A DNA stretch of 64,000 bases from Octopus sinensis (Eukaryota): NCBI RefSeq assembly GCF_006345805.1, contig NC_043000.1, positions 9,796,001 to 9,860,000 of the forward strand, written 5' to 3'. Shown here piece by piece: positions 11,938-64,000 of the stretch (its first letter is position 1; each line of letters opens with the position of its first letter). A program made the position numbers and the translations under genes. The notes under the pieces were generated by a model. The model saw only the letters and a program-made list of their open reading frames with translations, made no database searches and was not told where the DNA came from.

Positions 11938-12170
11938 AAGGCGGCGAGCTGGCAGAATCGTTAGCACACCGGGCGAAATGCGTAGCCGTATTTCGTCTGC
12001 CGTTACGTTCTGAGTTCAAATTCCGCCGAGGTCGACTTTGCCTTTCATCCTTTCGGGGTCGATTAAATAAGTACCAGTTACGCACTGGGGTCGATACAAT
12101 CGACTTAATCCGTTTGTCTGTCCTTGTTTGTCCTCTCTGTGTTTAGCCCCTTGTGGGTAGTAAAGAAATA
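11938..12170 (+). mobile_element. Group A1 tRNA-derived SINE (octopus OK-like by recollection), followed by the remainder of an older A-type copy
   Basis: A box TGGCAGAATCGTTAG, B box GAGTTCAAATTCC, central gaggtcgactttgcctttcatcctttcggggtcg, tail gccccttgtgggtagtaaagaaata. The 3' flank begins GGTATTTC. Confidence 0.88.
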
Positions 12171-13514
12171 GGTATTTCTTCGGTTTTACGTCCTGTGTTC
12201 AAATTCCACCTTGGTCGACTTTGCCTCTCATCAATCCGGGATCGATACAATAAAGTACCAGTCAAATACTCAGTTCGATTTAATCGACTAACCATCCTCA
12301 GTTCAAATTGCTGATCTTGCACCTACCCCTTTTAGCAGGACCTCTAGACAAGTGTGAGAAAAGTATCCTCAAGTAGAGACCTAACTCGAATGCTTGCAAC
12401 AAAGTTGACTCCGTTAGAGGTATCTTAAGTTGGCCAGAGTAGTATTTGAACTCAGAACTAAATGGGCACCAGAACTAACTGCAAGGCATCTTGCCTGGAA
12501 CCGTTGCAACAATCTACTGTCCTAGATTATTGGTACTTTATTTATCGACCTCGGAAAATAAAAGCAATGTCTACTCTGACTGGGTTTGAACTCAGATGCA
12601 TGTTGCTAGATGCATTTCAGCCGATGCACCAACGACTTTGCCAATTCACTGCTTCAGTCTGTTAGAACTTAGAACCTTAATACTGTCGAATATGGAGAGA
12701 GTGCTGAATCGTAAAGTGCAGACTAAATTCTCTGTAGTATTTAATTACGTCCCTCTATGTTCTAAGTTCAAATATCACCGGAGTGACTTCGAACTCGATT
12801 CCTCTAGTGCCGACATGTTATGCAGAAGATCGATTTCTTTCATAATACATACACCTTCTTTTTAAAAGACTATCTCGATCATAAACTTAAAACAAATTCT
12901 AGCGAATGACGATTAATGTTGAAGCCTGTCTTGATTTGAAATCTCAATTTGTGAAAGAAGAAGAATTTCCTAGAAGATATTGGAGATATAATCGAATTTT
13001 TTTTTTTACGCTGAAGACAAGAGAAACTGTTTTCTTGCATTCATGAATATTTTAACTTATCAGTTCAATCTAAACATTTGTGAGTTCATCTTTGATTTAA
13101 AAATGTATCTAGTGACGTGGTAATTTCCTGTGGCTTTAGTATATATAATGAGGAAACGAAAGTATACGGAATGCTAATAGGAAAAAAATAAATTTATCAG
13201 TAATTACCAACGTAAAGATGGTCATTACAGTTTTTTGAAGTTTAAGACAAATTTAAGTTGGTAATTTCTGGACGTATTCAGTGGAAAAGCTAATTGAAAC
13301 TGTCAGCGAACATAAATCGACAAACATTTTATCGAACACATTTCTCCGATCATAATTCATTGAAATTACCAATGTCTGCTTTCGTTGAAAACCTATTTCA
13401 TAGAATGTTTAAATGCATTGAAAAATAAATTCTTTCAGCATATTTGCATTTGCCATATATGTCTCTCCTCCTCCTCCCGTCTCTCTCTCTCTCTCTCATA
13501 TATATATATATATT

Positions 13515-13905
13515 GGCCGTGTGGTAAGTAGCTTGTCTACCAACCACATGGTTCCGGGTCCATTCCCACTGCGTGGCACCTTGGGCAAGTGTCTTCTATA
13601 ATAGCTTCGGGACAACCAAAGCCTCTCAGTGGATTTGGTAAACGGAAACTGAAAAGAAGCCCGTCGTATATATGTATATGTATATATATATGTGTGTGTG
13701 TTTGTGTATCTGTGTTTGTCCTCCCAACATCGCTTGACAACCGATGCTGGTGTGTTTACGTCCCCGTAACTTAGCGGGTCGGCAAAAAGACCGATAGAAT
13801 AAGTACTAGGCTTACAAAGAATAAATCCTGGGGTCGATTTGCTCGACTAAAGGCGATGCTCCAGCATCGCCGCAGTCAAATCACTGAAACCAGTAAAAAG
13901 AGTAA
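13515..13905 (+). mobile_element. Group C CORE-type SINE with internal (TA)n(TG)n
   Basis: tRNA head, ggcaccttgggcaagtgtcttct CORE-like motif, internal microsatellite and tail ...actgaaaccagtaaaaagagtaa. Further copies or fragments at ~42780-43140(-), 44205-44616, ~49915-50310, ~52430-52650, ~54995-55300(-) and ~62408-62860(-). Confidence 0.85.
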
Positions 13906-13938
13906 GCAAAAGATATATATATGTAATTTATATGTGTG

Positions 13939-60423: not shown

Positions 60424-61929
60424 ACGATACACAAGTGTATCTTAGACCCAATCAGAATTAAGAATAGTCAATACAATACACAGTAAATACAAAGTTAACA
60501 CCTTTGAAACGGGCCTCAGTTGGATGTTTTGAAATACTTATTCTAACTCGAGAAGTTTATGGCATTAGTACTGATAATTTTCTGAAAACTTTTTTTTACA
60601 GAACTAAAATCTTCGACTTCGTAGAGTGGAAATGTGTGCGAAGAGTATCTGTGTATACGCTTCTGAAAGCATTCGTGACTGCTGCTGTTAATACTTGTAT
60701 ACGTGATGATGTGTGTACACAAGTGTTATATATTTACTATTTTTAGTGCTAGGTAGAAGGAAAAGAATGCGATGATAATGCCAGCTTCCAGTGTGTGAGG
60801 GTCATTATCTCTGATAATCTCTCTTGGTGACCTTACATGTGTAAGAACGCTGTAGTTTATGTTAAACCTTCTCTCCTTCTTTCTATCTCTCCTTCGCTCT
60901 CATGTGTTTTGTTTTACTAACACATCACTTGTAATGGCGTCATTCATTTGACTTTTGTTAGTGAATGTTAGCTCAGCAGACGACTTTTAGTTTCAACCAA
61001 ATGCTATCACTAATTTCTGTTTGTAACACATCATTGTTCGTTTTTGATCAATCGTTCTGTATCGTTTTGTTATAAATATTGGTATATACTATGCTGAAGC
61101 TTATTTTAACTAATGATAAAGGAAGGATTTTCACCTGTAGCTATTCTGCTTCTTAGTGGGATTTGAACTCAGAAGTTAAACTTACCCAAACACTAACTAC
61201 AAGATATTTAGTCCCACACTGAAACGTATGCCTTCCGTCCCATATTTTGGGATAATTCTTTCTAATTTTAGCACAAGGATTGTAATTTTAGTGGAAGGAG
61301 GCAGTCGATTACACCAACTTCAGTGTACTCAACTAGTAATTATCTTATCAACCCCCGAAATGGTAAAAGGTAAAGCCGATGTCGCCGGAATTTGAACTCA
61401 GAACCTAATGAGTCGAAAGAAATAACCCTAAGAATTGGTCGGCGAGCTAACGGTTTTGTTACCTTGTCTTCTTTATATTGTGATGCAATATTCTTTCTAA
61501 TTTTGGCACAAGGTAAGCAATTTCGGGGGAGTGGTAAGTCGGTTGCTCAACTGATACTTACTTTACCGATTCTGAAAGGATAAAAGTCAAAGTCGACCCC
61601 GGTAGCATTTGCATTCAGAACGCAAAGTCGGAAGAAATGCTGCTAATCATTTTTTACCTGCGCAGTAACGATTCTTATTTCTTTACTACCCACAAGGGGC
61701 TAAAGATAGAGGGGACAAACATGGACAGACAGACGGATTAAGTCGATTATATCGACCCCAGTGCGTAACTGGTACTTATTTAATTGACCCCGAAAGGATG
61801 AAAGGCAAAGTCGACCTCGGCGGAATTTGAACTCACAACGTAACGGTGGACGAAATACCGCTAAGCATTGCGCCCGGTGTGCTAACGTTTCTGCCAGCTC
61901 GCCGACTTGTATTGTGGTATTGAAAGAGA

Positions 61930-63530
61930 CACTTCAATAACAGTAAACAATTACCCTTGAAATATCTCGAAAAGACGAAGTGCTTTTTAACTACAATAAG
62001 GAACTAAACATTTACACAGATAAAAGTAGTTCCAAATATATCTAGACGAAAGAATCAATGCGAAGCTTGTAACCATTCCAGTACAGTCTATTGAGTCAAA
62101 GTTTCACTGGTGCCAATGTATTACGGATAACATAATAAATCACTTCAGAGAATATAAAAAGGAAAATACTTGAAAATTTTACTGAGAGTGATTATTTCAC
62201 AGAAGGCTAGTGATGAAAGAGAAGGTAATCATGAAAGTGGGATGATTATTGAAGTAAACTAAATATTTGTGAACAAGGTAATTAAGAAATGAAACGTATC
62301 TCTTCGTTGTTTAATATCAAATCAAGGAATGCACTGGAAAAGTCTCGAAGAGACCAAGAGAGTGTTGTAACTACATTAGGAATTAAACACTGGACATAGA
62401 GATTGAAATACTCTTTTACTTCTTTCGGCCATTTGACTGTGGCCATGCTGGAGCACTGCCTTTTAATCGAGCAAATCGACTCCAGGATTTATTCGTTGTA
62501 AGCCTAGTACTTATTCTATCGGTCTCTTTTTGCCGAACCGCTAAGTTACAGGGACGTAAACACACCAGCATCGGTTGTCAAGCGATGCTGGGGATACAAA
62601 CACAGATACACAAACATGAATACACACACACACACACACACACACACATATATATATATATATATATATATATATATATATATATATATATATATATATA
62701 TATATACGACAGGTGTCTTTCAGTTTCCGTCTACTAAATCCACTCACAAGGCTTTGGTCGGCCCGAGGCTATAGTAGAAGACACTTGCCCAAGGTGCCAC
62801 GCAGTGAAACTGAACCCGGAACCATGTGGTTCGTAAGCAAGCTACTTACCACACAGCCACTCTTGCAAATATATTTATACGAGAGAATATTTGCAGACTG
62901 TAGACATCACGTACAGTGTTGAATGAAAGTTTGGCCGGTGCCAGCGTATTTGGAATAATGTAGTCGTAAATCACTCAAGAGAATATAAAATAGAAAATAT
63001 TTGGAAACTTTGTTAAGAGTAATTACTTCACAGAAAGTTTATGATGAAAGAAAATGCATCCACAAAAGTGGAATAATTATAGGAATAAACCAAATAATCG
63101 CGAACAAGGTAATTAAAGAATGAAAACTCGTTGTTTGTTGTTTAGCACCACAAGAAGTGCACCGGGAAATCTCTCGGATAGAGACGAAGAGTGTTTTGTA
63201 ACTGCTATAAGATGTTAAACATCGGTTATAGATTAAAATACTTGCAAGTATATTTAGACGAGAGAATAAATGTAGTTTATTAATATTACTGTGCAGTGTT
63301 GAGTAAAAGTTTTGTCGGTGCCAATGTATTAAGGATAATAAAACACTCCCGAGAATATACGATGGAAACATAAGATGGAAACATTGGCAATAATATTTAC
63401 TTCATAGGAAGCTTCTGATGAAAGAAATGGTATCCATAAGAGTGGAATAATTATTGAAGCAAACCAAGTATTTGTGAACAAGGTAACTAAGGAATGAAAA
63501 CTTGTTGTTTAACTCCAGGCTAGCTCTGGT
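61930..63530 (+). repeat. Diverged ~375-bp tandem array (about 3.5 units); unit 1 interrupted by a group C SINE
   Basis: Recurring landmarks ggtgcca(a/g)(t/c)gtatt, gagaatata, gatgaaaga, gaacaaggtaa and (gacg/acca)aagag(t/a)g near 62105/62930/63310. A partial unit starts near 61940. Confidence 0.85.
63034..63108 (+). other. Candidate 75-nt phase-0 cassette exon (paralogues 62203-62277 and 63408-63482)
   Basis: ttcacag|AAAGTT...GAACAAG|gtaatt encodes KVYDERKCIHKSGIIIGINQIIANK. No transcript evidence available. Confidence 0.4.
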
Positions 63531-64000
63531 GGAACAAGTTTCTGAAATACATCAATGCATTTTATTTCAAGCGGTCTAGCCGTGGGCATTAAGAATTTTC
63601 CGACATAGTTTATCTCAGGCTACAATAGGCAATATGATTTTTGTTTCCTTTTTCTTCCTATAGCAGCGTGTGATTTGAGGAAAACTTTGCTTCTATTTCT
63701 AATAGGTATAGTGAGCACGTAAAAGTTCCTTCATAATCATAACCGTCCCTCACATGCTAGTATGAGCTGGTAACATGTACCTATTTCGTTATTGCCCGCA
63801 AGAGGCTAAACATAGCGGGGACAAACAAGGACAGACAAACGGATTAAGTCGATTACATCGACCCCTGTGCGTAACTGGTACTTAATTTATCGATCCCGAA
63901 AGGATGTAGGGCAAAGACGACCTCGGTGGAATTTGAACTCAGAACGTAACGGCAGACGAAATACGGCTACGCATTTCGCCCGGCGTGCTAACGTTTCTGC

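Follow-up and report, generated by a model that had tools for sequence, protein, structure and literature searches.

The octopus SINE A1 has landed repeatedly at one position in the heads of other SINEs of its own superfamily. This recurrent site, ...TTAGC|GGTATTTCG..., lies between positions 49 and 50 of the SINE head and was observed in a 64-kb window, the whole stretch of DNA that was analysed. We regard it as reasonably likely that A1 homes to this position in older SINE heads through the preference of a LINE endonuclease, and that 5' ends resolved by homology give rise to composite elements. Site-preferring pairs of SINEs and LINEs are already known; in this one the target is the head of SINEs of A1's own superfamily.

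A1 is 233 bp long and has stops in every reading frame, indicating that it is non-coding. Strings resembling the pol III A and B boxes (TGGCAGAAACG and GAGTTCAAATTCC) can be seen in its head; ARAGORN found no tRNA, and Rfam matched none at E values up to 10. The centre of the element (..TTTCATCCTTTCGGGGTCGATAAATTAAGTACC..) resembles the CORE domain. Copies were found by BLAST with the unit at 11938-12170 as query, and the 3' end ...GTAGTAAAGAAATA is kept in 12 of them, so that the sample consists of 12 A1 junctions, all from one SINE-dense window. Target-site duplications (TSDs) of 13-21 bp are present around six copies.

11938..12170, plus strand: full-length A1 (BLAST), first unit of composite 1
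13939..14158, plus strand: solo A1 that lacks 13 internal bp (positions 42-54); perfect 21-bp TSD TATATGTAATTTATATGTGTG at 13918-13938 and 14159-14179
18500..18731, minus strand: solo A1, antisense in an old SINE core; perfect 16-bp TSD GGTACTTTATATATTG at 18484-18499 and 18732-18747
22981..23208, minus strand: A1, first unit of composite 2; first ~25 nt unusually diverged
24736..24968, plus strand: A1, first unit of composite 3
42155..42386, minus strand: solo A1, nesting not demonstrable; 13-bp TSD AGAAATTAT(T/G)ATC at 42142-42154 and 42389-42401
45832..46064, minus strand: A1 nested in the head of an older SINE, with the old head kept at 46065-46126; perfect 18-bp TSD GGTATTTCATCTATCTTT at 45814-45831 (downstream copy) and 46065-46082 (upstream copy)
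53370..53602, minus strand: solo A1; perfect 15-bp TSD TATATAAGTGTGTGT at 53355-53369 and 53604-53618
54279..54510, minus strand: A1, first unit of composite 4
59995..60207, plus strand: A1 without its last ~18 nt (no scoreable 3' junction), tail-to-tail with the next copy
60247..60424, minus strand: 5'-truncated A1 (positions 56-233 kept); 15-bp TSD TA(C/T)ACTTGTGTATCG at 60232-60246 and 60425-60439
61676..61908, minus strand: A1 with its 3' end against an older SINE unit
63782..64000, minus strand: A1 cut by the window end; 3' junction GGTACATG

The original prediction had counted GGTA at 7 of about 12 A1 3' junctions, and a recheck of all 12 returned the same number. Read in element sense, five of these junctions continue with GGTATTTC (at 12171 on the plus strand, 22980 on the minus, 24969 on the plus, and 45831 and 54278 on the minus) and two with GGTAC (GGTACTT at 18499 and GGTACAT at 63781, both minus). 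TATAY follows three other copies (TATATG at 14159, TATATA at 53369 and TATACT at 60246), and AGAA follows the remaining two (AGAAAT at 42154 and AGAATC at 61675). The last of these is the copy at 61676, whose 3' end meets position 17 (AGAATCG..) of a decayed and much older SINE unit at 61484-61675; no old SINE head was found upstream of this A1. The background frequency of GGTA is 0.26% of window positions, and 3 of the 8 non-dimer junctions begin with it (P = 1e-6), or 2 of 7 when the nested copy is omitted (P = 1.4e-4).

GGTA lies inside both copies of the 18-bp and 16-bp TSDs, and therefore belongs to the target and not to the SINE tail, which contradicts the idea that GGTATTT is the SINE's own 3' terminus. 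Both duplications had been described in the original prediction and proved perfect when re-read by coordinate: the one at 45832, in the head of an older SINE, and the one at 18500, which on the plus strand ends ...AAGTACC as had been claimed. When the empty sites are rebuilt, that at 45832 matches the SINE-head profile across the junction, and that at 18500 gives an antisense match to the SINE core (E = 5e-6).

Position matters in addition to the motif. In the window, GGTATTTC at SINE position 50 is used in 5 of 9 cases, compared with 2 of 163 other GGTAY sites (Fisher p = 2e-6). The proposal that GGTA(Y) is the target motif was thus correct in placing GGTA within the target, but is too simple as a rule. 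GGTACTT, which nearly every SINE core carries in antisense, is used once in 28 instances. Among window SINEs that read GGTAT at position 50, five are occupied and five are free, and A1 was found at position 50 in 0 of ~18 units with another tetramer there (CGTA, AGTA or GGCA). Site occupancy of ~50% is high for a mere preference, and counts against the explanation that we favour.

Seven of the 12 A1 copies lie within other SINE units, which make up ~13% of the window; the predicted self-nesting within the superfamily is therefore far above what SINE coverage provides. Five of the 12 (42%) are at SINE position 50, and the remainder are at GGTAC, TATAY or other sites. The target choice of A1 is accordingly a strong preference, short of strict specificity. 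We rejected a description of A1 as a strict target specialist, since only 5/12 copies are at one position of one target.

Four composites, at 11938, 22981, 24736 and 54279, consist of an A1 followed by a head-less unit. The second unit begins at profile position 50 in all four, and no solo SINE unit in the window begins there.

12171..12323, plus strand: second unit of composite 1, a head-less old SINE (profile 50-201) starting GGTATTTCT
22827..22980, minus strand: second unit of composite 2, head-less, starting GGTATTTCG, with a 19-nt deletion
24969..25139, plus strand: second unit of composite 3, head-less, starting GGTATTTCG, with a B-type tail
54092..54278, minus strand: second unit of composite 4, head-less, starting GGTATTTCG, with an A1-type tail

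The unit at 12171..12323 is decayed, has a tail that differs from that of A1, and is clearly older than the adjoining A1. In the core (50-168), its non-CpG divergence is 16.7% with 6/11 CpGs kept, whereas A1 11938 diverges by 4.1% from the A1 consensus and keeps 11/11. These unequal ages argue against a one-event chimera of the U6-L1 type. The unit at 22827..22980 has a B-type tail (..AAATTTCAGGCATTGTGCC..TAGTAGAAAGGATTATTAT) and looks older than its A1, with a difference that is not significant. The old unit adjoining A1 61676 at position 17 is far more decayed than that A1. Because the occupied units are of differing subfamilies and ages, the insertions appear to be independent.

In two composites, 24736 and 54279, both units are equal in age, and TSD-like repeats surround each whole structure: ATTATTAT(T/A)TGGGTGGT within 24716-24735 and 25133-25152 (0/500 shuffles as high), and AAAATGA(A/C)AT(G/A)TCT at 54513-54526 and 54085-54098 (shuffle p = 0.016). 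These two may therefore have been retro-copied as dimers. Extending this to all composites, an A1 at position 50 could have become a pol III source whose read-through transcripts were retro-copied via the tail of the second unit (a dimeric source gene or 3' transduction), such that the junction is inherited. The A1 consensus has no TTTT pol III terminator, and B-type and A1 tails are alike over their last ~14 nt, both of which agree with such a source. We nonetheless consider it unlikely. Among the four second units there are three or more tail types or subfamilies. In the 11938 composite the tail of the second unit is degenerate, and no TSD was found around the structure as a whole. The nested 45832 copy, moreover, arose independently by a classical insertion into this site. 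A single dimeric master, one of the ways in which the original prediction might have failed, was rejected: second units share 65-86% pairwise identity and first units 86-94%, and the second units have three tail types and fall into at least three subfamilies. Every master postulated under the source-gene alternative needs its own position-50 insertion, so that alternative reduces the number of independent events while the site preference remains.

A template switch at the RNA level is more doubtful still. While copying the RNA of another SINE, reverse transcriptase would stop at position 50, either pausing or reaching a cleaved end within an anticodon-loop-like hairpin, and would then continue from the 3' end of A1 RNA, giving one event and one TSD. 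This would account for the absence of the old head from composites and for the two sets of repeats around whole structures; the 49|50 boundary falls where the loop of a possible hairpin begins or ends, and template-switch chimeras of L1 (U6-L1) are known, being listed in the references of PMC4494074. However, the stability of the hairpin is no better than that of shuffled sequence (z = -0.43), no solo copy in the window begins at position 50 as a pause would predict, and only GGTA-bearing units are involved. The switch also leaves unexplained the 18-bp TSD and kept old head at 45832 and the GGTAC TSD at 18500, and the second unit of 11938 and the old unit beside 61676 are far older than their A1 partners.

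That there is no true target preference, GGTA(TTT) being the SINE 3' end or a product of chance or base composition, has very little chance of being right, even though the sample is small, the motif was picked after the data were seen and GGGTAGTA occurs in the A1 tail, because GGTA is in the upstream TSD copies 46065-46082 and 18732-18747, five TSD-flanked copies end ...AAAGAAATA without GGTA after it, and P values against window background are 1e-6 to 2e-6, also with the motif-suggesting dimers excluded.

Homing by insertion, which we prefer, must also explain the missing heads. The old head is absent in 4 of the 5 position-50 insertions, so that only 45832 is a textbook nested insertion. 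The original prediction explained composites by insertion followed by loss of the duplicated head. Its insertion step agrees with the lack of one dimeric master, but later loss involving a TSD is unsupported: in the 11938 and 24736 composites, first-unit positions 50-66 differ from the first bases of the second unit, and hence no hidden TSD survives there. A better fit than later loss is head loss at integration, through 5' joining assisted by homology or through deletion of target DNA. Positions 1-66 of composite first units diverge by 10.3%, versus 4.4% elsewhere, and those of solo A1 copies by 7.0% versus 5.0% (p = 0.03-0.04). This excess head divergence in composites fits mosaic heads. Annealing of the cDNA to the homologous old head is the most likely cause of head absence.

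The window also includes a candidate partner LINE.

57986..59662, minus strand: 5'-truncated partner-type LINE with the RT C-terminal part, a zf-RVT zinc knuckle and a 3' UTR; 24-bp TSD ACGTGTACCCTTAACGTAGTTCTC at 57962-57985 and 59663-59686

The last ~60 nt of A1 align with the 3' UTR ends of this LINE and of an O. sinensis LINE copy, and the proteins of this LINE are therefore assumed to copy A1. Among solved structures, its RT matches human L1 ORF2p (E = 1e-21) more closely than R2 (E = 1e-12), and the element is tentatively placed as L1/Tx1-like. For O. vulgaris, the list of recently active LINE groups has a single L1-like entry, L1-Tx1 (PMC13282606), and L1/Tx1-like LINEs are a type with known sequence-preferring endonucleases (PMC4494074). 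The endonuclease domain is absent from the 5'-truncated window copy. The proposed comparison of partner LINE 3' junctions went against the prediction, with GGTA at 0 of 2 copies: ACGTGTAC opens the TSD of the window copy, and TGGATG comes after the O. sinensis copy. The tails of both differ slightly from the A1 tail.

In the model that we favour, A1 would be copied by target-primed reverse transcription (TPRT) with L1/Tx1-like LINE proteins. The first nick would be non-random, strong at ...TTAGC|GGTATTTCG... and weaker at other GGTAY or TATAY sites, and this preference is presumably set by the LINE endonuclease. Where the target is a relative in the same orientation, the end of the new cDNA may anneal to the homologous old head, in place of the usual joining at a staggered cut. 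The old head would thereby be replaced or lost, leaving a full A1 and a head-less unit, and some composites were perhaps later copied as units. A stronger version is possible, but distinctly less probable: the LINE would have a truly sequence-specific nick site in the CORE-type SINE head, A1 would be self-homing, and annealing would place a fresh promoter-bearing A1 on an old SINE body.

In crocodilians, 90% of SINEU-3 copies lie in Mariner-N4_AMi, where they were placed by Tx1-Mar LINEs (Kojima 2015, PMC4494074). A1, with its putative L1-group (Tx1) partner LINE, is similar in preferring one position of another repeat family and in having long TSDs (16 bp for SINEU-3, 13-21 bp for A1). The tandem copies of SINEU-3, which resemble A1 composites, were once mistaken for a dimeric subfamily (PMC4494074). 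Unlike SINEU-3, which favours a DNA transposon, ~40% of A1 is at one position, in SINE heads of its own superfamily, and most A1 hits are without the upstream half of the target. Target-specific LINEs include the APE-type Keno (U2 snRNA genes), Kibi and Koshi (microsatellites) and Tx1L (Tx1D) of the Tx1/R1 clades, and the tRNA-gene-specific NeSL/LIN elements (PMC4494074, PMC4640811). As proposed for A1, their target choice is attributed to the nick specificity of the endonuclease, their targets are multicopy and the same "harmless site" rationale would apply; however, they are nearly strict specialists, whereas A1 also uses TATAY and other sites and its LINE copies are off GGTA.

In cultured human cells, Gilbert et al. 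2002 and Symer et al. 2002 reportedly described chimeric L1s and deletions associated with retrotransposition. As in our model, the nascent cDNA anneals to an upstream homologous resident element, giving a 5' junction by homology and no TSD. Those events are rare by-products, whereas for A1, judging from end products only, this would be the usual outcome with a same-orientation relative. Ohshima and Okada are said to have described the octopus tRNA-class SINEs OK, OR1 and OR2 in 1994. A1, compared by description only, resembles these in host genus and in having a head, a conserved centre and a LINE-like tail. OR1/OR2 are classed among CORE-SINEs, and the cited literature reports no target preference for OK, OR1 or OR2 (PMC4824008, PMC4758252).

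SINEs occupy ~12% of octopus genomes and are split by annotation into hundreds of unclassified families (PMC13282606). If A1 homes as proposed, many apparent SINE families would be nesting products and not separate lineages, and age and activity estimates from such families would need correction. The partner LINE would be a new mollusc case of sequence-preferring integration with a short, defined target that can be tested in vitro (GGTATTTCG versus AGTATTTCG or CGTATTTCG), and the insertions would provide a natural series of events for 5' end resolution of TPRT products in homologous targets. If heads are indeed replaced, this would be a route to SINE composites that could help to explain the hundreds of unclassified "SINE families" of octopus, and A1 variants without GGTA at their own position 50 would be favoured. 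The same composite pattern is present in an unrelated 543-bp contig, L030.

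Twelve relatives of the A1 unit at 11938-12170, which served as query, keep the 3' end ...CCCCTTGTGGGTAGTAAAGAAATA, and the bases that follow this end were read in element sense. GGTATTTC follows five times (12171+, 22980-, 24969+, 45831- and 54278-), GGTACTT once (18499-), GGTACAT once (63781-), TATAT or TATAC three times (14159, 53369 and 60246) and AGAA twice (42154 and 61675). Exact TSDs flank the copies at 45832 (18 bp, GGTATTTCATCTATCTTT, 45814-45831 and 46065-46082) and 18500 (16 bp, GGTACTTTATATATTG, 18484-18499 and 18732-18747), and TSDs of 13-21 bp surround four further A1 copies. 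A SINE profile search with the rebuilt empty sites places the first in the head of an older SINE of the same orientation and the second in the core of an antisense SINE (E = 5e-6). The junctions, TSDs and nested targets of the original prediction were all recovered. In both of these TSD-verified cases GGTA is also found in the upstream TSD copy, and is therefore target DNA rather than SINE tail; five other TSD-flanked A1 copies end ...GAAATA with no GGTA behind. GGTATTT is thus not the SINE's own terminus, an explanation that had been considered with the original prediction.

GGTA accounts for 0.26% of window positions, both strands counted. Because the four dimers suggested the motif, they were set aside in the chance test; GGTA then starts three of the eight remaining junctions (P = 1e-6), and two of seven if the nested copy at 45832 is also left out (P = 1.4e-4). 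Of the 12 A1 copies, seven sit within or abut other SINE units, far above the prediction from 9-16% coverage (P <= 9e-4), and five of the six same-orientation A1-in-SINE cases use one identical phosphodiester bond. The proposed nick is between profile positions 49 and 50 of the SINE head, with the favoured motif GGTATTTCG in the context ...TTAGCGGTATTTCG.... All of this evidence comes from the 12 junctions of one window and from one 543-bp metagenome contig (L030).

The predicted homing to GGTA(Y) sites holds in that GGTA is enriched at the junctions, but the motif is an incomplete rule. The window contains GGTATTTC at ten places: five directly behind an A1 3' end, one as an upstream TSD copy, and four free. 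Occupancy is 5/9 for independent GGTATTTC sites versus 2/163 for other GGTAY sites (Fisher p = 2e-6). Antisense GGTACTT, present in nearly every SINE core, is used at one of its 28 sites. Among all SINE units alignable at position 50, those with GGTAT there comprise five occupied and five free, and none of the ~18 with CGTA, AGTA, GGCA, AGCA or similar sequences is occupied. Within the SINE context GGTA seems necessary, and usage is raised about a hundred-fold by the flanking sequence or by that SINE context. A candidate second hot spot at position 17, suggested by the TSD-flanked copy 42155, was rejected, as ~43 bp separate this copy from the start of the old SINE and the match to the SINE head is not significant (p = 0.31).

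GGTA is missing from position 50 of most A1 copies themselves. At A1 positions 48-53 (for example, 11985-11990, 53550-53555 and 63962-63967), CCGTA is found three times, linked with G45, and CAGTA three times; the remaining copies read GGCA, GATA or GGTG at position 50, and CGGTA is found only in the 61676 copy. The young A1 family is therefore largely without the site that it seems to target; CpG decay may be responsible, or selection acting on the source genes. In the A1 copy at 13939-14158, a 13-bp deletion of positions 42-54 takes out exactly the hot-spot region. A tRNA origin of the SINE head was not detected by ARAGORN or Rfam.

In each of the four dimers, a complete A1 runs directly into a unit whose start is profile position 50. 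The second units at 22981 and 24736 carry a B-type tail, unlike A1, the tail at 11938 is decayed, belongs to a third type and has variants in common with the unit at 28274, and the second unit at 54279 has an A1-type tail. Identity is 65-86% among second units versus 86-94% among first units. Ages were measured as non-CpG divergence and CpGs kept over the 50-168 core:

Composite 11938: first unit 4.1%, 11/11 CpGs; second unit 16.7%, 6/11
Composite 22981: first unit 5.2%, 11/11 CpGs; second unit 8.5%, 8/11, plus a 19-nt deletion
Composite 24736: first and second unit equal in age
Composite 54279: first and second unit equal in age

Composite 24736 is flanked as a whole by the TSD-like ATTATTAT(T/A)TGGGTGGT, which 0/500 shuffles match, and composite 54279 by the TSD-like AAAATGA(A/C)AT(G/A)TCT (p = 0.016). 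It is possible that dimers were copied as units at 24736, 54279 and perhaps 22981, although any master of this sort must itself have arisen by an initial hit at position 50. Template switching, in which the RT leaves a SINE RNA that is paused on or cleaved, continues on A1 RNA and so yields a composite, cannot explain the two TSD-verified GGTA targets, the age differences between units or the restriction to GGTA-bearing units. Solo copies cut off at position 50 would also be expected from it, and a profile search found no solo units beginning there in the window. A possible hairpin at 37-58, with the nick at the edge of its loop, would favour template switching, but its stability does not exceed that of shuffled sequence, and as a structural target for insertion it was rejected on the same ground. 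A single dimeric master for all four composites is excluded, because the second-unit tails, identities and ages differ.

Two further composites join a young A1 to a much older relative whose 5' part is missing. The A1 at 61676 adjoins position 17 of an old unit, and in the unrelated contig L030 an octopus A1 copy is fused to an old B-type SINE of which only the 3' part, starting near position ~122, is present. At 59995-60424, two A1 copies lie tail-to-tail: one is short of its final ~18 nt, the other begins at position 56 through 5' truncation, and a duplicated ~24-nt segment, TTTAGCCCCTTCGATACACAAGT, separates them. The arrangement resembles the product of a complex insertion or of complex repair.

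A plain nested insertion would leave the old head, a TSD, A1, a second TSD and the rest of the old unit. This full layout is seen at 45832 and is missing in all four dimers. The original prediction explained dimers by insertion and subsequent loss or recombination of the duplicated head; a hidden TSD, with first-unit 50-66 equal to the second-unit start, fails in 11938 and 24736. The missing head of 11938 was also sought further upstream, but the profile positions covered by the unit at 11113-11250 overlap those of the second unit, so that it is not the missing half; upstream DNA at 11938 may simply have been deleted. The heads (1-66) of composite first units are 10.3% diverged versus 4.4% for the rest of the unit, whereas the values for solo copies are 7.0% and 5.0% (p = 0.03-0.04). 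The simplest reading of these end products is homology-assisted resolution of the 5' junction. A nick in a same-orientation relative would let the 3' end of the new cDNA pair with the homologous old head, and resolution of the junction by homology would then replace the head or make it a mosaic, without creating a new TSD. Chimeric L1s arise in cell-culture assays, and resemble the proposed pairing of cDNA with an old head.

The last ~60 nt of A1 align with the 3' UTR ends of a LINE in the window and of a copy at an O. sinensis locus (L001). The window LINE lies inside another repeat family, and nesting in repeats is therefore not limited to A1:

57986-59662, minus strand: 5'-truncated LINE with a perfect 24-bp TSD, ACGTGTACCCTTAACGTAGTTCTC, at 57962-57985 and 59663-59686
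~11440-11700, 14720-14980, 17150-17410, 17900-18160, 50500-50760 and 57830-57985: six copies of the other repeat family, ~270 bp or more

This family has the sequence ...GTATTTCAAAGGGCCGGCCTTGTCAC...CTACGTTAAGGGTACACGTGTCTGTGGAG... and two kinds of 5' part. An ORF of 362 aa at 58232-59320(-) corresponds to the C-terminal part of LINE ORF2 and includes a zf-RVT domain; Octopus sinensis and Argonauta hians supply its best named relatives, which identifies the host as an octopus. Relatives have RVT_1 and zf-RVT domains and the motif CPRC-x6-ET-x2-H-x4-C. The best match of the RT among solved structures is human L1 ORF2p (E = 1e-21; R2, E = 1e-12), and the recently active LINE groups listed for O. 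vulgaris include a single L1-like one, L1-Tx1 (PMC13282606). For these reasons we provisionally call the element, whose window copy is missing the endonuclease domain, L1/Tx1-like. At the 3' junctions of the candidate partner LINE, proposed as a comparison, neither of the two copies is at GGTA: the TSD of the window LINE starts ACGTGTAC, and TGGATG comes directly after the other copy. Since the tails of both differ a little from the A1 tail, the true partner may be a different subfamily.

Target specificity is found in many LINEs of the Tx1 clade (PMC4494074, PMC4640811). The closest known case to A1 is crocodilian SINEU-3, mobilised by Tx1-Mar LINEs, with 90% of copies at one site of Mariner-N4_AMi and a 16-bp TSD; its tandem copies were first mistaken for a dimeric subfamily (PMC4494074). 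Unlike SINEU-3, A1 has only a partial preference (about 40% at one site), its target is in the head of its own SINE superfamily, and at most hits the target's upstream half is lost.

When the stop-free reverse frame of A1 was used as a protein query, it retrieved one contig, L030, from the gut or environmental metagenome assembly XUSH22-1_SAMN16869657_METAG; its octopus A1 implies host or prey DNA in that sample. The A1 3' 18-mer gave 25 matches among metagenome contigs, all chance matches of 18-20 bp, and no match came from viral or prokaryotic genome contigs. A1 is also absent from L001, which contains one SINE fragment besides its LINE copy.

The window is AT-rich (GC 29-44%), eukaryotic and dense in short repeats. 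A profile built from eight diverse copies detects 54 SINE segments covering 13% of the window, close to the SINE content of 11.6% in O. vulgaris (PMC13282606). Older SINE units also appear to be inserted next to or into one another: five at 24349-25375 and three at 61249-61908, of different subfamilies, are arranged head-to-tail in the same orientation, suggesting that the clustering tendency predates A1. Old SINE fragments at 53864-53980(+) and 56011-56215(-) have opposite orientations and a common unusual site context, TGTGTTGCGGTATTTCTACCGGC, which suggests an inverted duplication of ~2 kb; their GGTATTTC sites are both unoccupied. The window also contains a transposase gene:

8837-9760, plus strand: nearly intact Tc1/mariner transposase ORF, 307 aa, HTH_Tnp_Tc3_2 and DDE_3

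Relatives 75-87% identical to this transposase are frequent in the ENA assembly ERZ21867824, whose loci with these relatives lack octopus SINEs in the 41 kb sampled, implying that a different host shares the mariner family. Spurious ORFs of 150-290 aa at 1581-2213, 5613-6488 and 28871-29385 derive from long tracts of (TA/CA)-type and other short tandem repeats.
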